NCBI RefSeq assembly: GCF_000143415.4 | Contig: NW_003314275.1 | Coordinates: 563,955-627,954, forward strand | Origin: Selaginella moellendorffii | Taxonomy: Eukaryota > Plantae > Lycopodiophyta | Reading direction: 5' to 3' | DNA: 64,000 nucleotides | Part shown: piece by piece, positions 6,600 through 38,920 of the stretch | Layout of the letters: the number at the start of each line of letters is the position of its first letter | How positions within the stretch are numbered: the stretch's first letter is position 1 | Program-made: the position numbers and the translations under genes | Notes under the pieces: generated by a model | Seen by the model: the letters and a program-made list of their open reading frames with translations, nothing else | The model's database searches: none | What the model was told of the DNA's origin: nothing

Positions 6600-8000
6600 T
6601 CATGAGCCTTTAATGTAGGTTAAGTTCTTTACCCTAAAATCCATCATTAGTTCTTTAACCAATGTGGTTAAAGTTAATGCCTAACAATTCTTGGATTTTT
6701 CTGGATGATGTTTAATAGATCACTCCTCAAACTCTATGAATTAGACCATTTAATAAGTTTGCCTAGTGTTCAACTCCTTCTGTGTGAATAGATGCATAAA
6801 AGGTCTGTGATCTGTTAACACCATAAACACCGCACTATGAAGATAGTGCCTTCATGTTTGCAAAACATGAATAATTGAAAGTAACTTTTACTTATATATG
6901 GAATATCATTACTCCATAGGATTTATAGTCTAACTCTTATATGCAATGGATTGTCCCCCTTGTATAAAAAATCCCTTTAGTGCATAGCCACTTACATCAC
7001 AAGTCACCTTATAAAGTATTGATGGATCAACAATATGAAGTACTAAAGCCTCACTAAACAACCATTTCAATGCCATAAAACTGTCCTTTATAATTTTTCC
7101 ATTCGAATGACGCATTTTTACATAACAATTGTGTGAAGGAATAGCCACCTTCACAAACTTATGTTAGAAATGTTAGTAGTAACTGACCATACCAAGTAAA
7201 TTATGTAGCTTAGCCATTAAAGTTAATGTAGACCAATTTTCCAACCTAGCCACCTTTTTTAGATTTGTTTTGACATCCTTAGATGTCACAATGTAGCCTA
7301 GATACTTCACTTTTGACCTTGCAAATTTATATTTGCTCTTTTTCATGTAAAGTTAATTTTTATATAGTAATAAAAAAACTTTATATAAATGCACCTTATA
7401 CTCCTCCATATTCTTACTAAAAATAAGAATATCATCTAAAAAATCTTTACAAAGTCATGTAAATAATGTTTAAACACCTCCATTATCAACCAAGTAAATG
7501 TGGCTGGTGCATTTGTCAAACTAAATAACATAATTGTGAATATAAAATATCCAAAGCTTGTGTTAAATACTGTATTAGAGATAAATATGTTATCTATTGC
7601 AATCTAATAATATTCAATCCTCATATAAATCCCTGTAAATACTTGGGTTTCGCCAAGTTTATCTAAGATATCATCTATATGCAGCATTGATATTTCATAT
7701 TTTACTATATATTTATTCAAAGTTAATACACATCTACATTAAGCCATCCTTTTTCAAAAACAAAATTGGTGCACCAAACAAATATTTACTTAGCTTAATA
7801 AATTCAAACTCAATTAACTTTTTGATTTATCATTAAACTTCTTGCTCTTCTACATAGTATAGCCAAAATAGATGTTCTTAAATTGGCTTTGTCTTTGACT
7901 CTAGTGTATCATGTTCCACACCTCATAATAGAGGCAACCTATAAGAAAGTTCAGATGAAAAATATAAAAATAAATTCAAGTACAACCCACATTATTGCTT
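6600..8000 (-). mobile_element. Degenerate Ty3/gypsy pol (reverse transcriptase-RNase H) relic
   Basis: Minus strand reads LDDILIFS (RT YxDD region, ~7420-7441) and VTCDVSGYA...GQSIAY (RNase H, ORF 6930-7154); many stops. Confidence 0.85.
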
Positions 8001-14019: not shown

Positions 14020-15370
14020 CTAGTACGCCAAGAACTCGCAGATGAAGGGCTGATCCGCGTGCTCGTCGTTGCAATACAGCCCTGGATGCTGCTTGAATCC
14101 CTGCTTGGCCAGCAATTCGCGCACCGCGAGCACCAGATCCTTGTTCCCAATGCCTCGTCCATCGCTCTCGCGCAGCACGCTCTGGACGGCATTGCTGAGA
14201 GCACCGTAAGCACCCTCCTTGTTCCCCCCGGGCTTCGCATCCGCTGAGGTCTCATCCGATTGACAGCCGCTCACAAGCACCGCCATGTCCGATCTGCGAC
14301 CCTGGTTCCCACTTCCAGCGTAGGCATCGTGTGGATTCGCGTGCGTTTTCACCGCCGGCGATGCGTACTCCTCCCCCGATTCCTCGAGCTTTGTCTTGAG
14401 GAAATCCTGCGCGAGACCACCGATTGCTCCCCAGATCCCCCCCTGGCCTCCATCGTTCCCGCCGCTGCTCTGGAGCCTCTGGAAGAGGAGATTGACGAAC
14501 TTCTTCACCTTGGGGCTGGCGTCCTCGCCGAAAACGTCGAAGAGCGTGGGTCGGATGTTGCCCACGCTCACGTCTTGCCTGCCGGTCTTCTCCTTGAGGA
14601 GATCGATGAACACCGACAGCGGCAGTGACTTGTTCTTGACGACGTCACCATTCTCAGTTTCTTCCTCGAGAACTTGCTCTTCTTCTTGGTCCTCTTGGCG
14701 ACGGTGGCGGCTGCCCAGCTTGAATGGGAGCTTGATGCCGGATCGGCTCTCAAACGCGCTCTGGACGCCCTGGAAAACGAGATCTCGGAATCCACCACCA
14801 CGGCCACCTTGTTCTTCCTCTTCTCCGGAGTATGATCGCGATCCCGTGGAGCTATCGCCGACTTGCTCCTTGGCATTCTCGATCAATCCACCGCTGTGGC
14901 ACGAATCCGAGACGAGCGTGATCCGGCATCCCTCCGGGAGCTTGTCAACCAAGTCGCGGAAATCATCATCTAGAACAAGAAAAATCAAGTTTTTATCAAG
15001 ATGATAACGATCGATCGATCTTACCAGTGATCAAGTTCATGTCGCAAGGAACAATGCATTCGTCGTAGCCCGTATCATCCGGCTCGCCCGACTCGGCAGG
15101 AACTCGGACACCATGGCCACTGTAGTGGAAAAAGAGGATACCGCCATCCTCGGTCCCCTCGATGAGATTGGCAAGAGCTTTCCGGATGTTGGCGCCGGTG
15201 GGCTGAGTGCCCTCGGAATCGGTGTCGATGAGCACCACGATTTCATCCTCGGCGAAGCCAAACTTCTCCACCAGGCTGCGATACATCCGCTTCACATCGT
15301 TGACACAGCCGTGGAGCTCGGCCTTGGTACCGGGGTAATTGCAACCCACCAGTAGCGCCCTCTTGCCCAT
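14020..15370 (-). CDS. Type II metacaspase, 2 exons
   Basis: [21 protein letters not shown] and DSCHSGG catalytic His-Cys motifs, long linker, C-terminal QHPGLYC. Confidence 0.96.
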
Positions 15371-15907
15371 GGATCGATCGATCCGCGAAGATCACTGCAA
15401 AGAGGAGGAACCCAGATGCGCAAAAGAGGATTTTTGTCTTAGGAAAAAGAGGATTTTTTCGCTGAGATCTAAGAATGCAGTATCGATTGTGTGGGGAGAT
15501 CGAGATAGCACTTACCAGCGATGGGATCAATCGATCGAAGAAGGCCACTCCTTTTCTTTCCAGGACTGAGAAAGAAGATAAATACTCTCACATAGTGGCT
15601 ATGGGCTATGGATTAACTAAATCCGAGTCTCGCTACTTTCTTTTCTAGCTAAAATCCGGAAGAGCGTGTTGTCGGTGACAGTTCCGTAGAGAGAATCTTT
15701 TCTCCGTACGAGAGCATTTTGGGGGAATATTCGTGCTTCTTCTACCTGGAGTGAAGAAAAAAATTTCTCTAATGGAAGCTCCCCCTTTTTCTAGTTAGGG
15801 TTTTAGCGGAAGGAAAAAAGGCTCCTTCCTTTGAGTGTCGCCAACGTTGACGTGACTTAATGTAGCCTCCAGATAGATATTTTAGGGCTCCTCTCCTTTG
15901 TGGCGCA

Positions 15908-18900
15908 ATGGCGCATCGTCTAGCAGCGCGATCTTCCTCCAGAGCCGCGATTCGGCGGCTGTGCGTGCGATTCTTCCACTCCAGCACCACAAGCAGCGGC
16001 GATCGATCGGCGCCGCGCCAGGTACTGAAATATCTCGAGGAATCGCAACGGCGGCAGCCTTTTGGGGTCCGATCGCTGCCATTCCATGGCAGCCCGCGGT
16101 GGATGCAGACGGCCGCGGCGTCGGCGCCCCGGTCCGTGCCCCTCTCGCGCCTCACGGATAATTTCCTCGATGGCACAAGCAGCGTCTACCTCGAAGAGCT
16201 CCAGAGGGCGTGGGAGGCAGATCCCAAGAGCGTGGATGAATCGTGGGACAACTTCTTTCAGAACTTCACAGGGAAAGCGGCCTCCAGCCCGGGGGTGTCC
16301 GGCCAGACGATCCAGGAGAGTATGCGCTTGCTGCTGCTGGTGAGAGCGTACCAGGTCAATGGTCACATGAAAGCCAAGCTCGATCCACTGGGACTGGACG
16401 AGCGGGTTCCTCCTGAAGATCTCAACCCTGCGCTCTATGGATTCACAGAGGCCGATCTGGATCGGGAGTTTTTCATCGGGGTGTGGAGGATGTCCGGGTT
16501 TCTGTCGGAGAATCGCCCAGTCCAGACTCTCCGCGCGATCTTAAAGCGACTCGAGCAAGCCTACTGTGGGACGATTGGGTATGAGTATATGCACATCTCG
16601 GATCGAGAGAAGTGTAACTGGTTGCGGGAGAAGATCGAGCAGCACGTTCCTAGCAAGTATTCTAAGGAAAGGCAGATCACCATCCTCGATCGTCTCATCT
16701 GGGGGACAAAGTTTGAGAACTTCCTGGCACAGAAGTGGACGGCCAAGAGGTTTGGACTGGAAGGTTGCGAGACACTTATCCCTGGTATGAAGGAGCAAAT
16801 CGATCGAGCAGCGGACCTGGGAGTCGAGAGCGTTGTCATCGGTATGCCTCACCGTGGCAGGCTCAACGTACTGGGAAACGTTGTGAGGAAGCCTCTGCGG
16901 CAAATCTTTAGCGAGTTTGCTGGGGGGACCAAGCCTGCCGAGAGTGGCTACAGTGGAAGTGGTGATGTCAAGTACCATCTAGGAACGTCCTACGATAGAC
17001 CGACCAGGACAGGGAAGCACATCCATCTCTCGCTTGTTGCGAATCCTAGCCACCTGGAAGCTGTGGATCCGGTTGTGGTTGGTAAGACGAGAGCCAAGCA
17101 GTACTACTCGGACGACTTCGAGAGGAAGAAGAACATGGCGATTCTGCTTCATGGAGATGGGAGCTTCTCTGGCCAAGGTGTGGTGTATGAGACGCTGCAC
17201 TTGAGCGACCTTCCAAACTACACCACCGGGGGAACGATTCATATCGTCGTGAACAATCAGGTGGCTTTTACGACGGATCCTAGGAGCAGTCGCTCCTCGC
17301 CTTACTGCACGGACGTTGCCAAGGCTTTGAACGCTCCTATCTTTCACGTGAATGGAGATGACGTTGAGGCTGTCGTCCATGCCTGCGAGCTGGCCGCAGA
17401 ATGGAGGTGCCAGTTCAAGGCGGATGTTGTGGTGGACATAGTTTGCTACCGTCGTTTTGGTCACAATGAGATTGACGAGCCATCGTTCACTCAACCGAAA
17501 ATGTATCAGGTAAGCACAATCTTTGTCTCGATTTTCTAGTGCTTGATGGTTTTTTTTCTTTTTTTGTGCAGGTTATCAAAAATCACCCAACTTCATTGGA
17601 ACTCTATGAGAAGAAACTCATCGAAAGTGGTCAGATCAGTGAGGAGACCGTGAAAAAAATCCATGACAAAGTGTATGGAATTTTAAGCGAAGAGTTCGAG
17701 AACAGCAAAGACTACGTTCCTAAGACACAGGACTGGCTTGCGGCATATTGGTCAGGTTTCAAGAGTCCGGAGCAGTTGTCACGGTTAAGAAACACCGGGT
17801 AAGGCTAAATCTTTTGCCTTTCGTCTTCGTTTCTTACATGTGTTGGTGTTCTGACTGCAGTGTTAAACCAGAGGTATTGAAAAATGTTGGCAAGAAAATC
17901 ACCACTCTTCCTCCCTCGTTTACCCCGCATAGAGCGATCAAGAGGGTGTATGAGCAACGTGCGCAGATGATTGAAACGGGAGACGGAGTGGATTGGGCTA
18001 CAGCTGAGGCATTGGCGTTCGCAACGCTTCTTGCAGAGGGGAACCACGTACGGTTGAGCGGCCAGGACGTCGAAAGAGGCACTTTTAGCCATAGACATGC
18101 CGTGGTACACGATCAAGAAACTGGTGAAAGATACTGCCCCCTTGACCACGTTGTGACCAATCAAAAGGAGGAGATGTTTACCGTGAGCAACAGGTATTTT
18201 CTCCAGCTATCTGTTGTTCTGGAGCTAACTAGTTTTTATGCAGCTCGCTCTCGGAATTCGGGGTGCTTGGGTTTGAGCTCGGATATTCAATGGAAAACCC
18301 GAATTCGTTGGTGTGCTGGGAAGCTCAGTTTGGAGACTTCGCCAATGGTGCGCAGGTGATATTTGATCAGTTTTTGAGCAGTGGAGAAGCCAAGTGGTTG
18401 CGTCAAACGGGACTGGTGTGCATGCTGCCACACGGTTATGATGGACAAGGGCCAGAGCACTCGAGTGCGATGCGTCAACGGGACTGGTGTGCATGCTGCC
18501 ACACGGTTATTGTGGCCGAGGGCCAGAGCACTCGAGTGCGAGGCTAGCAAGGTTTTTGCAGGTTTGTGCCGTTGGTTTTTGCGTGACATTCTTTGACGCG
18601 ATGCTCTTTTACCTTACAGATGAGCGATGATCATCCCTTCGTTATTCCCGAGATGGAAGTGTCTCTTCGGAAGCAGATCCAGGAGTGCAATTGTCAGGTT
18701 GTGAACGTGACGACGCCTGCAAACTACTTCCATGTTCTTCGCCGACAGGTAAGCCGAGACGTGGCTTTTCTGTTCTAATAAACTTTGTTTGATCGTGTCG
18801 GCAGCTCCATCGCGACTTCAGGAAGCCACTCATAATTATGTCCCCGAAGAATCTCCTTCGCCACTCGTCATGCCGCTCGAATCTGTCCGAGTTTGATGAC

Positions 18901-28728: not shown

Positions 28729-29910
28729 TCAATAGATGGAAAGATCTGGGGGTGCTCCGTAAACTGTTGACCACGACAAAGGTATCCTCCAGTTCTTGCA
28801 TTCCTTGCCTGCGTAAATGTGTAAGTAGTTAGCATGGTTGATCCAAGAACGATAGGACATACCATTGCAAGAATGGAAGAATTTATCGCAAGCGCTCGCG
28901 AGGAAGGTAGCGTCTGGGATGTTATCTCCTTCGGCACAGTAGCACAGCACTGACAGAACTTTCAAGCCTCTTTTCTGTAGCGGAAAACCAAGGCAGGGAA
29001 GATTTTAGACTGGTTTTCACCACTTTGAATGAATAGAAGTACCTTGAAGGACGTGAACAGAGCAGTAACCGGCAGCCGCGAGAGGTAGTCTTGGTCATGC
29101 TCTCCGACTCTACCATCCATCGCATCTCTCAGCACAGAAAACTCGAAGGGCTCGGTGTGCTGACCGGATTGTTTCACGTCCAGCCAGCCTAGTCTCTCGC
29201 ACAGCTCGTCTTTGCCATCTTCGCTGGCGCTGGTTTGATAGTAAACTTGAGGCCTGGAAAAGGAAGGAGAAACGCATTAGCAAGTAAAGCAAGAGGATCG
29301 GATCGTACCCAGCGTTGTGGAGAAGGTGTCTCTTTCCCGAGTCCAAGCCGGATAGCACGACGACGTTTTCAAATCCCTCACTCTTCGCCCAGTCGGCCAG
29401 ATTCTCGGCAAACTTAAGCGTGGAGCCCTGAAGCATCTCATATAATCTCAAGTGATTCGTGAAAAAGTTCTAAGTCCTACCTTGACAAGAGGCGATCGCT
29501 GTTGCAAGACTGTGATATCACTAGCAGAATCCACGTACACTGCAAAAGCACAAGATAGCATGAGACGAGAAGAAGAAAAGAAGAGCAAGAAGGAAAAGAG
29601 GAGAAAGAGAGATTCCTCTACTTCTCTCTTCAAACTTACATTCCATTGCGACTGCTAATTCGCCCCGAGGCTCGGGACCAAATGGATCATTTCCCACGCA
29701 CGGCAACACATGAGGATCATCCAAGAATCCGACCCTGGGCATTCCATACGTCGAAATCAAGAGATCCACGGCGAGCTGGCCCGCATTTCCAATCGAGAGC
29801 GCCGGCTGATCGCAAGAAATCAGACAATGAGCGAGGCAAAGGCCTGGATTGAAACTCACCAGTACGAGCGCCTTGCGTCGCAGCCGAGCCCTGTCGCCAC
29901 AAAACTCCAT
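28729..29910 (-). CDS. PAC2: Proteasome assembly chaperone 2 (intact copy)
   Basis: PALSIGNAGQLAVDLLIS, LPCVGND, LQQRSP, CYCAEGDNIPDA, WRIPLSWSTVYGAPPD. Confidence 0.93.
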
Positions 29911-29919
29911 ATGGACGAA

Positions 29920-30348
29920 GAACCCTAAAGTTGCAGTTAACAAAAAATGGTTCAGGAGTTTTTAATCTCATCTTAGGTCAGATGGAGCGCGAGTGGCGAC
30001 TCACGACTTAGTTACTCATCATCACCACTAGGCATCGAACCATGGACCTCTCGATCCACAACCCAACACCTTAACACTGAGTCACATGACTCAGCCTTGT
30101 GAAGATGCAACACGTCAATACTTTTATTGAGAACACTCGGGTTTTAGTGTTTAAGGTTTTAAAATTAGGGCTTTTCAAAACCAAAATTTCTCGCACATGT
30201 TTAAAAGTTTAAAGAAGAAAGAGGGGGGCATTTTAGGAAATCGTTGTCCTCCTCCTCGGCAATGTGCTTGGCGAGCTCCTGATCCTGCTGCTGCTGCTCA
30301 CGCGACTGCATGAAGCTGTGTGTGTGGTCGATCACTGCATCGATGCGT
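29920..30348 (-). pseudogene. Duplicated RPN3 3' end and 3' UTR fragment with internal deletion
   Basis: Matches 44515-44885 joined to 45030-45080 ([10 protein letters not shown] coding remnant). Confidence 0.9.
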
Positions 30349-30785: not shown

Positions 30786-31818
30786 ATTTAAAGAGAATAA
30801 AATAGCACATTTTATCTTTCTCCTTTTAATCCAATTGGAAAAGGAGTAATTGTTTTAATTGAGAGAGCTTTTAATGGTTATTTTATTCCAATTTATCTCA
30901 TAAAGTTTCAAGGATTTGTAATGACAATATATCTAAATTTCATCTCATGATCACATTCACTATAATGGCCTATAAGAAGCTATTGCTACTGTGGCCAGAT
31001 TTCCTATGAAGCTAGAGATGTTGCAAGCATAGAAGTCTAGCATGGGGAAGAATGTGTTCTCTTTAGTGGCCATTTTCATTATAAAAGTTTTGAATAATAG
31101 TGGATTTCATTGTGGAAAGTCTTGTCAATATGAATTTCATGATAAAAGCCATAATATTTAACTCATTGTAATCCATTATATTACTACAATATATGTCAAT
31201 ACATTTATGATTAGAAGTTCAGAACTAACCAAACCTACCACTACCCCTGAGGCTAAATTTTTTTTGCATTCCCTGAGTTGCAAGCCAAGTGGGAATGGTT
31301 TCCAAGCTAAGTGGGAGTGATTTTGGAGTGAATAAATGTTCACTCCACTCTAATTCATTGCATATCCACTACAAGAACAATCTTTTTTACACTTCACTTT
31401 AATATATACTTTGACAACCACTGTAAACACCATTGCAACACACATGCATTCTGTACTTCAGCTTCATAAGCATGGGATGGCATCAATTATGCACTCTACT
31501 GCAAAACACTTCATGCCATGTATTTCTATGCCACATCAGCCATTAACATGACTTTTGTTTTTGATAGATTGAGATGGTGTTAGTGCCATGTTGTTTTTGA
31601 TGGAGATTGCCAAGTTATGTGGGTGAGCAAGATAAGAGGCGAGGCAAGGAAAAAGAGGCCATTCTTCTCGCATTTTCCAGTTAAGACGAAGATGGTTCCA
31701 ATCCACCTGACAAAATTCCCAAAGAATTTCATGAGTCAAAATCATCGTCTTTCTTTGATCCAGTCGTACACCTCCATTGCTGCTCGTGCTTGACACTCGG
31801 ATCCATCTCCTCAAACTC

Positions 31819-31980
31819 ATGGGAGACTATGCACCGCCCGACTCCACCCCTGCTACCAACGACGAGCACACCTTTACCAGCAAGCTTCCTCCTGCAACAG
31901 TCCTGGAGCTTACGATCCCTCAGTACGTTTTTCAAGGACTAGAGAGTTACCTGGACAGGGTAGCGATCGTGGACACAGAC
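31819..31980 (+). pseudogene. N-terminal fragment of a 4-coumarate:CoA-ligase-like acyl-activating enzyme
   Basis: MGDY...EHTFTSKLPPATVLELTIPQYVFQGLESYLDRVAIVDT resembles the 4CL-like N terminus; similarity stops at the palindromic insert. Confidence 0.6.
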
Positions 31981-32180
31981 AGGATCCCACCCAAACAAAG
32001 CTGCCATGGCCGTGGCAATCCAGCCTTGGCAAGCAATCGCCACGGATTTCCCAGGCCATAGCAGCCATGGCCATGTTGCCATGGCAAAGGCCATGGATTG
32101 CCACAGCCATGCCACAGCTAAGGCCGTGGATTGCCACGGGCACAGCATTTTCAACACTGCTGCCTGGAACGATCCATCCA
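31981..32180. repeat. GC-rich foldback element built from GCCATGGC/GCCGTGGCAATCCA motifs (MITE-like)
   Basis: gccgtggcaatcca near 32008 is reverse-complementary to tggattgccac near 32094 and 32126. Confidence 0.55.
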
Positions 32181-32724: not shown

Positions 32725-34661
32725 TTAATAATGCTGAAGCCATTCACCAATGTACAACTGGATAATGCACGTTAAGGACAGCAAATGCAAAATTGGCTTA
32801 CTTGACGAGGTCTCACAATCTTGTTGTCACGCAAGTCAAGGCATTCTTTCCAGTGTGCTAGGTAGCCAACAACACGAGCCAATGCAAACAGGAGTGGAAA
32901 GTTTCCTTGAAATCCAAGAGCTCTGGAATATGAAATTAATGCAGTTGAAAACATTTTCAAAACTTACTTGAAAACAATCCAAGAGTAAAAGTCGATATTG
33001 GGATAAAGTTTCCGCTTGATGAAGTACTCATCTGAGAGAGCGGCTTCTGCTAATGCGTCTGACACCTTTAAAGTTGAAATATAAGAGTCAGGCTTTTTCT
33101 GGTACTTTTTCTTTTCTAATATACTTACCTTGATGAGCGGGTCATGCCCTACAATCTCAAATGCATCTTCTGCCAGCTGCCGAATTACCTGAATAAAAGA
33201 AAGATAAGAAACTTTCAAATGTAAAAGTGAGCAAAATTCAACCTTGACACGTATTTCATATGCCCTATGGATTCGATGGCCAAATCCAAACAACTTCTTC
33301 TTCTTGTTTTTTACAGCCTCTAGATAGGCTGGGATATTGTCGACGGTTCCAATCTCCTGAATCATGTTTGCACATGCCTACAACATAGTAAAAGTACCAC
33401 ATTCTTGCAATCAGGAAATTCCTTGCAAATTTTACCTCATTTGCACCTCCGTGAAACGGGCCTCCTAGTGTTGCAACTCCTGCTGCTAAACAAGTGTATA
33501 GATCCACGCCACTGTTATTGAAAGAGGTAAAGTAACAGTTAAAGCTGTAGTCTTAAAACACTTGCCATGACACAAGGTGTCGTACAGCAGCAGATGAACA
33601 GCTAAGCTCATGTTCCATATGCACAATGAGCAGCCTCTCAAGAATGCGAGCCAATAGCGGAGAAGACCTGGGAAAAAGAGAGACCAATTTTCTTACAGCT
33701 TGAGTATATAAAAACTAGTGGAGGGTGACCTTGTTGGGCTGGTATTATGGAACATATGCATGTAACGAAAGTTGGCAACGTATGGAAGCTCAGAAGATGG
33801 ATTTGGCAGAACCATACCCTCTGCATGCTGGAATATATGTGCGATATAAATAGGTATCTGATAAACAGAAAGATATAATTCGGTAGCATGGAATAGCTAG
33901 AATTTCACCTGACCAAGTACGCGTGCAATGAGCTGGTCTTGGACATGTTTGTCCTGGTATGCACCCTAATTTCTAAACCATGTTAGAAAGCTGATGAGAA
34001 AGATGAATTACAATATTACCACATCAGGCTGTGGGTAAAACGAAGACATGGAGCTAATAGCAGTTGCCAGCAACCCCATTGCGTGTGCATTCTTTGGCTG
34101 ACTCTTTATCAGGCCCTGATAAAACGAAATATAAAAAAAAGTATGATGGATCTCTTAAAATGTATGCTCACCATAGCTCCTTTGTGACAGCAAGTTTCCT
34201 TCCTGACGCTATCCTCAAATCTCGAAAGCTTGGCCTTGGATGCCAAATCTCCATAGACTGATGCACGGAGTGACTTCTATACGTTATTTAGGCTGAAAAA
34301 CTACTTACTTAGAAGGTAAGCAACTTGTAAGAATGTGCAATGTTGTGCAAGTTCCTCCACTGGGTAGCCCCTAAATTTGAGCGTCCCGTCATTCCCATTG
34401 GCGAGCGAGATTGCAAACTTGGTGACTGCAGTGTTGAAATATCCGGGGTCAAATAGCAGCAGATCACCATCTTGTGCTGCGGCCTGCATTCAAAACAAAA
34501 TGACATGTCTAAAGACAAACATGCATTGCTACCTTGTTGATCATTTCTTTGGCCAAAACAATTCCACCCTGTTTGATCTCAAGCTCAAATTCAAGCCCTG
34601 TCCTGGTATCTGCAATTGTGAGTAAACCAGGGCCGCCACCCAAAGCTTGATGCTCATCCAT
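32725..34661 (-). CDS. Citrate-synthase-like protein A (derived from the peroxisomal CSY type, divergent, catalytic residues kept), ~13 exons
   Basis: [64 protein letters not shown]; manual splicing gives an open frame. Confidence 0.9.
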
Positions 34662-34792
34662 AATGGTTTTGATATTCAGCTCTCTGAAGTTCTCTGCTCT
34701 ATATATGCATACTCTAAACCAGGCGTGACATCGGGACATTGGGACATCAGGACATCGAGACATTGGTGCATCCCAACATTGATCACATGCTC

Positions 34793-35119
34793 ATTGGCGT
34801 TTTTTATAAAGCTGGCATCTGATAAAGCCTGCAAAAAGAACAATTCCGCAATGTCAAGCTCAAACTCCCTGGTATCCTCAACTGTGAGTATATCAAGACA
34901 TTGGCGTTTTTTATAAAAGCTGGCATCTGATAAAGCCTGCAAAAAGAACAATTCCGCCCTGCTTAATGTAACCCTTATCCTCAACTGTCAGTATATCAAG
35001 ACATTGGCATTTTTTTTATAAAAGCTGGCATCTGATAAAGCCTGCAAAAAGAACAATTCTGCCTTGCTTAATGTCAAGCTCAAACTCCCTGGTATCCTCA
35101 ACTGTGAGTATATCAAGAC
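34793..35119 (-). repeat. Three tandem ~105 bp degenerate copies of the citrate-synthase-like exon 1
   Basis: Translate to LTVEDTR-EFELDIKQGRIVL versus LTIADTRTGLEFELEIKQGGIVL in gene A. Confidence 0.75.
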
Positions 35120-36832
35120 TATACTGGGCACCACAAGACTATAAACAGCATATAAATAGATAGATAGCTATCAAGACATTGGCGATAACTTTAGAGACCT
35201 GCGTTGGACTGCCCGGAGCTTGGAAACACACTCATGTGGCCCCACATGAATAATGTTAAAAGAGAGATGCCATAAATCCATTGCATTCATGTAGATAGGT
35301 GGTGAGTTGCGATCGTGGGCGCAGCGGCGGCAAGCTCAAGCGTGGGTAGTGGGGGCCAGTGGGCTCATGGCTCGGCAGCCATGGCAGCAAGCTGTGAGTG
35401 GACAGCACCAAGCAGTGGGCATGGGTAGCAGTGAGCTGCGAGCTGGAGCATGAGCGGCATGAGGGCGGTGGTGAGCAGCATGGCTAGTGGCTTGCTCATG
35501 GCTCGTGAGTAGGAGGCTGCGAGTTGTGAGCTGTGAGTGGGGTGCAAGCCTGAGCAGGGTGAGGCAAGTGTGTGTATGGGTGGGTTTGTGGTCTAGGTGG
35601 TGTGAAGAGGTGGCGCTGAGCTTGAGGAGGCAGTGGCAAGCTGCTGCAACGATGAGCTGCTAGTGAAGGTGTGGGCGTGGGGCTCAATTGTTGGTGATTT
35701 AAGTTCATGTATATGTCTTATGCACAGCATATGATGTGCATGGCATCGGCATTATATGTGCATGTCATCGGCATTATATGGGCATGTGTATTTTCCCGCT
35801 TCAGTTTGAAATTTGAGGGCATTATGTTTTCTTGAACTAACTAAATGTCTAACTAAATATCCAACTAAATGTTTAATGTTTTAGAGATTTAACAAGCACA
35901 TTTTTTGGTTTGCTTAAGCAAACTTGTAGATAATAATGGATATACTAAGAATATGCTTGGATATTCTACTATCTAATGGTTATTATTCATTTAGATTAAT
36001 CTTGTATTTATAATTTGTATAAATGTTTATAATTTATAAACTTTTCTAAACACCTTATAGTATATTCCCATCTAATGGTAATCTTGTTGTTATAAATATG
36101 TTTATAATTAAAAAAAAATCTTAAATAGGGTGTATTTTAAGTAAACATTCTTATTAAAACATTTACTTTAATAAGTGTTATGTAATATTTAAAATAAACA
36201 AACAAACCAAATGTTGCTGACCATTTGGAAATTTCCTCACCAATTTGCTCCGGGCTTACGCACGCTGCTGCGACATTTCCCATGAAGGAAAAGAGTGCGC
36301 TAAAGATTCGGAAATCTGGAAATGTAATGCATAGCAATTTATTTAGTAGATCTAGACATAACTTTATAAGCTCAAAATAAAAACTCAAAGCATAAAAGGG
36401 ATTGTAGAAAATTTATAAACTTTAACAATCTATGGCCAATGAATGATTGTGAAAAAGGGTAATTAGATGAAAAACCTTCTGTTTGTGAGATAACCAAACT
36501 TAATGTTCCACTCGCAAATACATTTAGTTTAGATCTGAACTGTCTCGAAGATCGGGTGGGGGGAGGGGGAGGCGGGAATATCGTGCTTGCCTACCTACGT
36601 CCTCTGGCTGGAAGCCTGCAAAAAGCCTGCAAAAAGAGCTGTTTGACGTCAACCTTGACTGTTTGATGTCTTCTGTAAAAGCTTGCATCTGATAAAGCCT
36701 GCAAAAAGTAAAAGATTGAATGAAAAGAACTACTATATAGCACATGTACATTATTACATAAATATGCAATTTTTTATTCTCTAAGAGTTTTTATTATTCA
36801 CGTTGGTTGTTTGTGTCTAGCTTGAAGAAACC

Positions 36833-38920
36833 ATGGCAGCTCCCAGTCAATCCAGGAAATTGCGCATCATCGATCACAGGACTGGGCTCACATACGAGAT
36901 GGATGTATGTGAGCGAGGCTGTCTCAAGAGTTCTGACTTCTCCAAGGCATGCTTCGTTTTTTCGTTGGTGCAATTAAAAGACAACTTCATGTTCTTGTTC
37001 CTCTTCTCGCAGATCAAGGCTGGCGGAGATGGCAAGGGATTGAAGCTGTATGATCCGGGATTTGTGCATACAGCTCCCGTGAAGTCCACCATTGCATTCA
37101 TTGATGGGAGGAATGGGATTTTGAGATACAGAGGATACCCCGTGGAAGAGCTTGCGGAGAGAAGCACATACTTGGAGGTGGCATATTTACTGTGTAAGTA
37201 TACATCTTTTCAAGAAAACGGATAAATCTTTTGTGGAACAGGTAAGGGGAATCTCCCCACGAAGTCCCAGCTTTCTGAATGGGAAGCTGCAATCCAAAGG
37301 CAGTCCTCAATGCCAGAAGAGCTTCTGGCAAGCCACTACAGCTATGAGAGAGTGTTGTTGTGACACAATTTTGTTTTGCAGGCCCTTATTGGCGCTCTTC
37401 CTCGAGATTCTCATCCAAAGCAAAACTTTGCCACGGCCTTGTATGCCCTCATTTCATTCAATCCAGATGCAAATCCTCTAGTAGCGGTGAAGCTTTAATT
37501 TTTTCCTAGTATACAATCTTTGTCTTTGTACAAATGCAGGGACATGATCTGTACAAAACAGAAGCTGCACAAAACCTGCACATTATTCGTATAATGGGAA
37601 AGGTGATGTCTCATTCATCAATAATACATGTTTTTGGGGTCCATTGGCACCCAGCTGGAGGCATTAGACCATTGGTTTGTTAAAATGTGCCTTTTCAGGC
37701 TGCTAGCTTGGCAGGCGCAATCTACGTTCATATGGAGGGTCAAAAGCCCATTCAAAATCCGAACAACAGTCTCAATTTTTCTGAAATGATTCTTTATATG
37801 TTCCAGTCAATGTGAGCATTAAGCAAAATTTCTTGCTTTGACTTCAACTGCTTTCTGCCTTCAGGGGAGATCAGGACTTCAAGCCAAATCCCGCACTTGC
37901 AAAAGCTTTGGATGTGATTTTTGTAATATTGGCTGAGCATGAACTTGGTACAGCAACGGCAGCAACTTTACACCTTGCATCAAGGTGCTTTTCTTTTGGT
38001 GTAATTTTACTGTCTGCTTTCTACTAATTTTTCAGCAGTGGAGTGGATGTTTATACAGCAATTGCTGGAGGCACTAGTGCATTATCAGGGCCCAATGATA
38101 TAGGGGCTGTTGAGGTAAACGACTATCAAACACTAGGATTTTCTGAATAAACGTTATGATTTTGTTAAGGCTGTTTTGGACATGCTCAATGAAATTGGAA
38201 GCATTGAGAATGTTGCATTCTACATAGAAGAAGCCAAGAAAAGGTATGAAGAAAATTAATAAATTATATTATACTAAATTATTTTTACTAACAGTAACAC
38301 CAAACTACCTGGAATTGGCCACCGTGTATACAAGACATATGATCCTCGAGCGAAGGCAAGTGTAACAATGGCCTTTCAAAGTTACTTGACAATGTTTTAA
38401 TTTTGCAGCTCATTCAAAAGCTAGCAGAAGAGGTTTATGACGTGGTTGGCAAGGATCCCCTGGTAGAGGTGTAATTTACATTAATGGACTTCTGTTCCAG
38501 AGCCTTATGTTTTGAGTGATCAGGTTGCAGCTGCATTGGAGAATGCCATTATTGCCGATGAGTATTTTATAAACAGAAAACTGTATCCTAATGCCACCTT
38601 TCACTTGGGCCTCTTGCTTAGGCAAGTAGTTTTGCATATTCACTGACATGGTTTCAAGACATGCTTTGATGTACAGGGCTCTTGGCTTTCCTAAACAATT
38701 TTTTGTGGTTCTTGTCTCTATTGCCCGAATTGCTGGTCAGTTGGCACACTGGAAAGAGTCTATGAATGACCCGTCAACTAGGCTGATGAGGCCACAACAG
38801 GTGAGTAAAAATCTCTATTCTTTTATAACATTCATTCATTCATATTCTGTTTTTACATGGTCACTGCTTTTTCTCTTGTAGTGGTACACTGGGCAAAGGC
38901 TTCGCCATTATTCAAAGTAA
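36833..38920 (+). CDS. Citrate-synthase-like protein B (pseudoenzyme-like, His and Asp catalytic residues substituted), 14 exons
   Basis: [36 protein letters not shown] kept; GPNDIGAVE replaces GPLHGGANE and YPNATFHLG replaces YPNVDFYSG; frame open after splicing. Confidence 0.9.

Follow-up and report, generated by a model that had tools for sequence, protein, structure and literature searches.

Within a 64,000-nucleotide window of the genome of the lycophyte Selaginella moellendorffii (assembly GCA_000143415.2; contig NW_003314275.1, positions 563,955 to 627,954), two citrate-synthase-like genes, here named A and B, stand head to head. They form a diverged pair of plant citrate-synthase paralogues without peroxisomal targeting signals, one of which, B, is a pseudoenzyme kept by selection: it has lost catalytic residues, yet it is under purifying selection and gives rise to spliced RNA. 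The pair is annotated automatically in RefSeq (A as 'citrate synthase 3, peroxisomal' and B as 'citrate synthase, glyoxysomal isoform X2') and is undescribed in the literature that we searched by accession, by topic, through the Selaginella expression atlas and through the papers behind the solved plant structures, none of which yielded a paper on A or B. All positions below are those of the window, and the coordinates of the main features are collected in Table 1.

We rebuilt both gene models from the raw sequence. The models contain neither stops nor frameshifts, have introns of 44–96 nt and encode proteins that equal the RefSeq proteins and share 38% identity with each other. The start codons of A (34661) and B (36833) lie on opposite strands, 2171 bp apart. 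A tblastn search of the window for other pieces of citrate synthase returned only A, B and an exon-1-like fragment at 35049–35111. RefSeq isoforms X1 and X2 of B differ by one Ser, owing to a tandem CAGCAG acceptor at intron 7 (38033–38038).

Both proteins belong to the family of plant peroxisomal citrate synthases. Pfam PF00285 matches single exons of A and B at E = 1e-9 to 1e-11, and the best match in a phmmer search of the PDB is the Arabidopsis peroxisomal/glyoxysomal enzyme CSY3 (E = 8e-134 for A and 6e-162 for B). By sequence and by predicted fold, the closest solved relatives are Arabidopsis CSY3 and the pineapple non-mitochondrial citrate synthase. AlphaFold models (mean predicted local distance difference test (pLDDT) scores of 83.3 for A and 87.3 for B; Foldseek template-modelling scores to 9x0i/9xau of about 0.83 and 0.88, respectively) predict that A and B keep the citrate-synthase fold. 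The gene structures agree: the canonical S. moellendorffii gene has 14 exons, and exons 2–13 of B have the same sizes except for exon 6 (113 versus 110 nt); A has precisely lost intron 9 relative to the canonical gene, and several of its exon lengths have changed. In a maximum-likelihood tree, both nest within the clade that the peroxisomal-type enzymes of green plants form (support 95/90), A at the base of the streptophytes and B in a land-plant polytomy, both on very long branches. Their stem branches (3.99 changes per site for A and 2.31 for B, against 0.1–0.4 for ordinary plant enzymes) are 10–20 times longer than those of ordinary plant enzymes. Whereas the canonical peroxisomal enzyme retains 75–83% identity across land plants, from liverworts to angiosperms, A and B are only 50% and 58% identical to the canonical enzyme of their own species.

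We compared residues in an alignment of 202 full-length homologues, with Escherichia coli GltA as the numbering reference. Of the catalytic triad (His274, His320 and Asp375 in pig numbering), A has all three residues and B has only His320. All 202 homologues have the catalytic His and Asp, and the loss of both in B is therefore not chance variation. In B, Asp281 takes the place of the catalytic His (E. coli His264) and is followed by Ile where the family has an invariant Gly; Thr376 takes the place of the catalytic Asp (E. coli Asp362) within the motif PNATFHLG. The Asp and Thr states are the same on the second haplotype. B has also exchanged Asn242 for Gly, the equivalent of E. coli Phe383 for Val, and several residues of the coenzyme A (CoA) site. 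Mutagenesis of the pig and E. coli enzymes has established that loss of His274 or Asp375 alone cuts turnover by orders of magnitude; without both, B should be unable to run the known citrate-synthase mechanism, and its residues mark it as a catalytically dead paralogue. As far as our searches reach, it appears to be the only plant citrate-synthase homologue without both the catalytic His and the catalytic Asp. B nevertheless keeps all five His and Arg residues that bind oxaloacetate or citrate, namely His246, His320, Arg329, Arg401 and Arg422 (pig His238, His320, Arg329, Arg401 and Arg421).

A retains the equivalents of pig His238, His274, His320, Arg329, Asp375, Arg401 and Arg421, with its triad (His278, His317 and Asp373) in the motifs GPFHGGANE, GFGHRIHRAYEIR and PNIDFYS. 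Its substrate loops are altered: HELSCS places Ser246 at the near-invariant Asn of the HExN loop (pig Asn242), DPR has become EIR, and Trp377, four residues past the catalytic Asp, replaces a Gly that is invariant in the 202 homologues (PNVDFYSG to PNIDFYSW). Of the oxaloacetate/citrate-binding set, the His and three Arg are thus kept in both proteins and Asn242 is lost in both (Ser in A, Gly in B). The alignment has 112 columns with a conservation of 97% or more. A departs from the family residue at 26 of them and B at 30, and just 6 deviant columns are common to both, which is about the number given by independent change. A sequence-only reading of the window, made by a model, had described two intact multi-exon genes of the peroxisomal CSY lineage, head to head and about 2.2 kb apart, one with the triad kept amid altered loops (EIR for DPR, HELSCS) and the other with His-to-Asp and Asp-to-Thr changes; all of this is borne out by the closed gene models, the phylogeny, the shared intron positions and exon sizes, and the motifs, and the two B codons are exactly as it placed them (GAT and ACC).

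Selection on the pair can be gauged from a second copy of the locus on scaffold GL377602, which retains the order PAC2, glycosyltransferase, B′, A′, PAC2. Identity between the two copies is 94–96% in the genes and drops to 84–90% in the flanks. The two haplotypes have both reading frames open and every one of the 25 splice sites intact, five of them GC donors. Between B and B′ (exons 2–14) there are 8 non-synonymous and 10 synonymous differences (ratio of non-synonymous to synonymous rates, omega, 0.23; P = 0.004 versus neutral), and between A and A′ there are 8 and 4 (omega = 0.59; P = 0.32 versus neutral); the two copies of the canonical gene differ by 1 and 12 (omega about 0.09; P = 4 × 10−7 versus neutral), and A is significantly less constrained than the canonical gene (Fisher P = 0.004). 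Among A, B and the canonical gene, non-synonymous divergence (dN) is 0.34–0.59 and silent sites are saturated, so that YN00 gave no dN/dS ratio for the paralogues. Agreement with the family consensus falls with the conservation class of the column, from 77 through 55 and 32 to 11% in A and from 74 through 71 and 36 to 32% in B. A neutral gene of about 430 codons with 12–13 introns would not stay intact over such divergence, which argues that A and B were selected for most of their history. B is clearly still under selection; A may be relaxing.

Within B′, exon 1 (7230–7345 of the GL377602 segment that we fetched) holds about 15 clustered substitutions, and the RefSeq model starts inside intron 1 (408 amino acids). 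Since reads of the B′-type allele in RNA have an ordinary exon 1 that differs at one synonymous site, the cluster probably reflects poor assembly quality or is confined to that haplotype.

Both genes are transcribed. RNA contigs and raw reads were mapped on 32725–38724, a stretch that ends before the last exon of B and the downstream glycosyltransferase. In 20 public runs from 9 studies, 0.23–0.35 of the sampled 31-mers of the 6.25-kb stretch were present, a share close to that expected from the exons of both genes together. RNA contigs from two runs carry A and B spliced as modelled, including the GC-AG intron of A, and the joints of A introns 1–8 were seen in them. For B, introns 1 and 3–8 (among the joints listed) are supported by contigs and by 2–8 raw junction reads each per run, on the correct strand, in two stranded runs. 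An RNA contig of B starts 22 nt 5′ of the ATG, and an in-frame stop lies 15 nt upstream of that ATG. Spliced RNA and the haplotype comparison together show that B is transcribed and is not evolving neutrally, two points on which the proposal of the sequence-only reading hung. Mean exonic depth in the two raw stranded runs is about 5–7x for B and 0–0.3x (a few reads) for A, roughly 20-fold lower, which argues against tight co-regulation of the pair.

GC-AG introns are frequent in B (4 of 13, three with the GCAAG donor consensus) compared with A (1 of 12) and the canonical gene (1 of 13). Of these, B introns 1 and 3 and A intron 7 are confirmed by RNA joints, and the second haplotype shares all five GC donors of A and B. 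It is exactly at the GC-AG introns that the old GenBank models EFJ28330 and EFJ20503 are mis-spliced. In the two raw runs, which date from 2026, nearly all B reads (36934–38442) carry second-haplotype alleles (15 variants listed, 7 of them non-synonymous), and in a contig run labelled as another organism the B sequence is a mosaic of both haplotypes.

Neither protein carries a recognizable peroxisomal targeting signal of its own. The canonical S. moellendorffii enzyme (XP_024528054.1, 503 amino acids) has a type 2 peroxisomal targeting signal (PTS2), RLAVLSAHL, at residues 3–11, and its exon 1 encodes both this signal and the first conserved strands. In A and B the protein begins about 35 residues further along, past the PTS2; because the signal lies within the shared first exon, a separate upstream PTS2 exon is not expected. 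A PTS2-like nonapeptide (R-[LIQ]-x5-H-L) is absent from the A and B proteins, and a six-frame scan of 34500–37000 gave two hits, one out of frame in B exon 1 and one on a strand and in a frame unusable for either gene. At the other end, A and B stop within two residues of each other (...LQHY and ...HYSK), where the 31-residue tail of the canonical enzyme begins, and their final tripeptides, QHY and YSK, do not resemble a type 1 signal (PTS1). The protein and intergenic scans thus agree with the sequence-only reading, which had found no PTS1 or PTS2, and disclose no upstream exon that would supply one of the latter. A and B would accordingly be placed outside the PTS2 import pathway. Folded oligomers can enter peroxisomes, and in yeast and plants it is established that partners without a signal are carried in piggy-back; a cytosolic location is for this reason only a presumption.

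Because A and B stand head to head and are truncated alike at either end, we infer a single ancestor that already lacked the PTS2 N-terminus and the C-terminal tail and that underwent an inverted tandem duplication. Residues private to the canonical Selaginella enzyme are uninformative, as there are only five and neither A nor B has any of them. The approximately unbiased (AU) test does not reject a clade of A, B and the canonical Selaginella enzyme (P = 0.156), and the exact positions of A and B in the tree are unreliable.

The explanation that we favour, with a probability of about 0.55, is that A is a condensing enzyme whose pocket has been remodelled, that B is a dead di- or tricarboxylate binder with a regulatory or scaffold role, and that both act outside the PTS2 route. 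A and B would be old paralogues of the plant peroxisomal citrate synthase, which is of a bacterial type II-like kind; they would have evolved very fast, from a truncated ancestor through its inverted tandem duplication and a long independent divergence. Both would still be citrate-synthase folds kept by selection, neither of them an ordinary citrate synthase any more, and they probably do something other than make citrate. A would remain a Claisen-condensing enzyme, and the remodelling of its pocket (Asn to Ser in HExN, DPR to EIR, Gly to Trp) probably means a changed substrate preference or a weakened activity; altered specificity may follow from these residues. B would be unable to enolise acetyl-CoA, because His274 and Asp375 are gone and the residues on the CoA side are remodelled. 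Since it retains every oxaloacetate- and citrate-binding His and Arg, it is most likely a non-catalytic di- or tricarboxylate-binding protein, predicted to serve as a regulatory or scaffold subunit that partners itself, A or the canonical enzyme. Several observations weigh against this account. Ligand binding by B is a prediction from the residues that it retains. The tree does not put A and B as sisters, and the AU test fails to reject an A plus B clade (P = 0.16). Between haplotypes, A cannot be told from a neutrally evolving gene and A′ has a Gly-to-Ala change inside the HGGANE catalytic loop, so that A may now be under relaxed constraint. Furthermore, we found no orthologue of A or B in other species, the next best matches being ordinary enzymes at 51–53% identity, in a database that contained no canonical enzyme of any other Selaginella and in which the best non-self match to the canonical enzyme came from Diphasiastrum (83%); the pair is therefore documented, so far, in a single species. 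In the annotated Diphasiastrum genome we found only ordinary citrate synthases.

Other explanations share parts of this evidence. The sequence-only reading proposed a co-regulated, obligate cytosolic heterodimer in which A provides catalysis and B a scaffold or regulator, acting on a non-standard acyl-CoA or 2-oxoacid. In citrate-synthase dimers an Arg of the partner subunit (pig Arg421′) reaches into the neighbouring active site, and B keeps this donated residue (Arg422); the deviations of the two proteins are largely complementary, their head-to-head arrangement is conserved on both haplotypes, both RNAs occur in many transcriptome assemblies, and plants offer a precedent for catalytic and non-catalytic companions in the serine carboxypeptidase-like (SCPL) acyltransferases (PMC9541279). 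We nonetheless consider an obligate heterodimer unlikely, given the roughly 20-fold excess of B over A in the raw runs, an intergenic region of 2.2 kb with repeats and other weak transcripts in place of a compact bidirectional promoter, and the weaker constraint on A between haplotypes. That the genes are functionless relics drifting towards pseudogenes, with residual transcription and frames left open by luck, would fit the change of about a quarter of near-invariant family positions in each gene, the omega of A (0.59, not different from 1), the substitution in the catalytic loop of A′, the restriction of the genes to one known species and the setting of the locus, in a block between PAC2 duplicates with repeats. 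It is improbable in the face of the omega of 0.23 for B, the conservation of 25 of 25 splice sites (five GC donors among them) on both haplotypes, substitutions that avoid conserved columns, confidently predicted folds and correctly spliced transcripts in several studies; with dN of 0.34–0.59 and saturated silent sites, a neutral 430-codon gene of 13–14 exons is not expected to stay open.

A further alternative is that A, B or both join the PTS2-bearing canonical enzyme, ride with it into peroxisomes and modulate an enzyme of the glyoxylate cycle and beta-oxidation, B for example as a dominant-negative or regulatory subunit. Such import of signal-less partners within folded oligomers is known, type II-like citrate synthases form dimers or hexamers whose subunits share active sites, and B, the constrained member of the pair, is closer to the canonical enzyme (58% identity; branch 2.3 versus 4.0). 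Set against this, a divergence of 42–50% from the canonical enzyme means that mixed oligomers may no longer form, and we give the idea a slim chance. Least probable, and put forward as a long shot, is a lycophyte-specific A/B hetero-oligomer outside the normal import route, with A as the catalytic subunit and B as a dead one that binds substrate. It would make a citrate analogue from another acyl-CoA or 2-oxoacid, perhaps glycosylated by the adjacent UDP-glycosyltransferase.

Comparison with known systems places the favoured reading, a remodelled condensing enzyme beside a dead binder, in context. The plant peroxisomal citrate synthases (Arabidopsis CSY2/CSY3, 9x0i/9xau; XP_024528054.1) share family, fold and intron positions with A and B and are the best match in sequence and structure, and A has their catalytic triad and substrate Arg residues; they differ in that A and B lack the PTS2 and the C-terminal tail and B lacks the catalytic His and Asp. 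Bacterial type II citrate synthases (E. coli GltA; PDB 4g6b, 1nxe and 2h12) share the N-terminal beta domain and the all-alpha core, and GltA His229, His264, His305, Arg314, Asp362, Arg387 and Arg407 align column for column with A and B. They are, however, only 32–36% identical to A and B, whose genes are eukaryotic and carry plant introns, and residues matching His264, Asp362 and Phe383 are missing from B. Triad-bearing paralogues have been recruited to other acyl-CoAs as fungal alkylcitrate synthases and bacterial 2-methylcitrate synthases, and A would resemble these if its substrate is new. Methylcitrate synthases are nevertheless distant from A (E = 1e-40 to 1e-43, against 1e-134 for plant CSY3), and fungal alkylcitrate clusters have an adjacent dehydratase or fatty-acid synthase, whereas the A/B locus has neither. 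Plants pair catalytic enzymes with non-catalytic companion paralogues among the SCPL acyltransferases (PMC9541279) and in DRM2/DRM3 (PMC2965745). In these pairs an expressed paralogue without catalytic residues is kept alongside an active one, as B is beside the putatively active A; the enzyme families differ.

The region between the two genes contains tandem repeats, along with short stretches that are weakly transcribed. Just upstream of A, at 34799–35119, three tandem units of about 105 bp include partial copies of A exon 1 (coding ...LTVEDTREFELDI...); they are present on the second haplotype too, and no RNA coverage was seen over 34799–35119. Weak transcription occurs at 35300–35930 on the plus strand and at 36125–36324 on the minus strand. 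One intergenic stretch of about 200 bp reaches a depth of 240 in a contig run, with loose ends on both sides, which suggests either a repeat or one exon from a longer transcript lying partly elsewhere. Downstream of B, 279 bp past its stop on both haplotypes, is an apparently intact UDP-glycosyltransferase gene. One RNA contig from the 5′ end of B is 2973 nt long, about 1.6 kb beyond what B needs, and may run into this gene. Pieces of PAC2-family genes flank the block of A, B and the glycosyltransferase on both haplotypes; on the second they lie at 232–1146 and 14908–16088 of the fetched GL377602 segment. A short open reading frame at 31777–32061 on the plus strand had no Pfam match at E = 0.001 or better.

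Table 1 Features of the A/B locus, in positions of the 64,000-nucleotide window
Feature	Position	Strand	Details
Gene A, citrate-synthase-like	32725–34661	minus	13 exons, 431 amino acids; rebuilt model, identical to XP_024531006.1
A exons 1–7	34661–34533, 34483–34309, 34257–34172, 34115–34020, 33965–33909, 33857–33730, 33667–33566	minus	
A exons 8–13	33511–33436, 33377–33243, 33188–33129, 33065–32968, 32922–32802, 32757–32725	minus	
A codon 246	33601–33603	minus	AGC, Ser in place of the near-invariant HExN-loop Asn (pig Asn242)
A codon 278	33451–33453	minus	CAC, retained catalytic His
A codon 317	33276–33278	minus	retained catalytic His
A codon 373	32991–32993	minus	retained catalytic Asp
A codon 377	32979–32981	minus	TGG, Trp for Gly invariant in 202 homologues
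A intron 7, GC-AG	33512–33565	minus	joint 33511 to 33566 in RNA contigs; ends CT..GC on plus strand; donor conserved on second haplotype
A/B intergenic region	34662–36832		divergent; no PTS2-coding exon
Gene B, citrate-synthase-like without catalytic His and Asp	36833–38920	plus	14 exons, 437 amino acids; rebuilt model, identical to XP_024531005.1
B exons 1–7	36833–36946, 37013–37193, 37242–37327, 37382–37486, 37540–37602, 37699–37811, 37865–37984	plus	
B exons 8–14	38039–38114, 38170–38243, 38295–38355, 38409–38468, 38524–38621, 38677–38800, 38882–38920	plus	
B Gly codon	37947–37949	plus	column of pig Asn242
B codon 281	38097–38099	plus	GAT, Asp at the catalytic His (pig His274, E. coli His264)
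B codon 376	38596–38598	plus	ACC, Thr at the catalytic Asp (pig Asp375, E. coli Asp362)
B introns 1, 3, 10 and 12, GC-AG	36947–37012, 37328–37381, 38356–38408, 38622–38676	plus	
UDP-glycosyltransferase	39199–40685	plus	Pfam UDPGT; two exons
PAC2-family piece	29521–29943	minus	
PAC2-family piece	about 43600–44000		

Few plant enzymes are as conserved as the peroxisomal citrate synthase, and A and B have escaped that constraint yet stay open, spliced and expressed. Were the pair functionless, it would be a useful example of the persistence of multi-exon genes under weak selection. An A/B hetero-oligomer working with the glycosyltransferase would, if true, amount to a small cluster for specialised metabolism with a citrate synthase at its core, for which plants offer no described counterpart. 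Should the pair be functional, then either the citrate-synthase fold has taken on a new role in regulation or ligand binding, or plant metabolism has acquired a new condensing activity.

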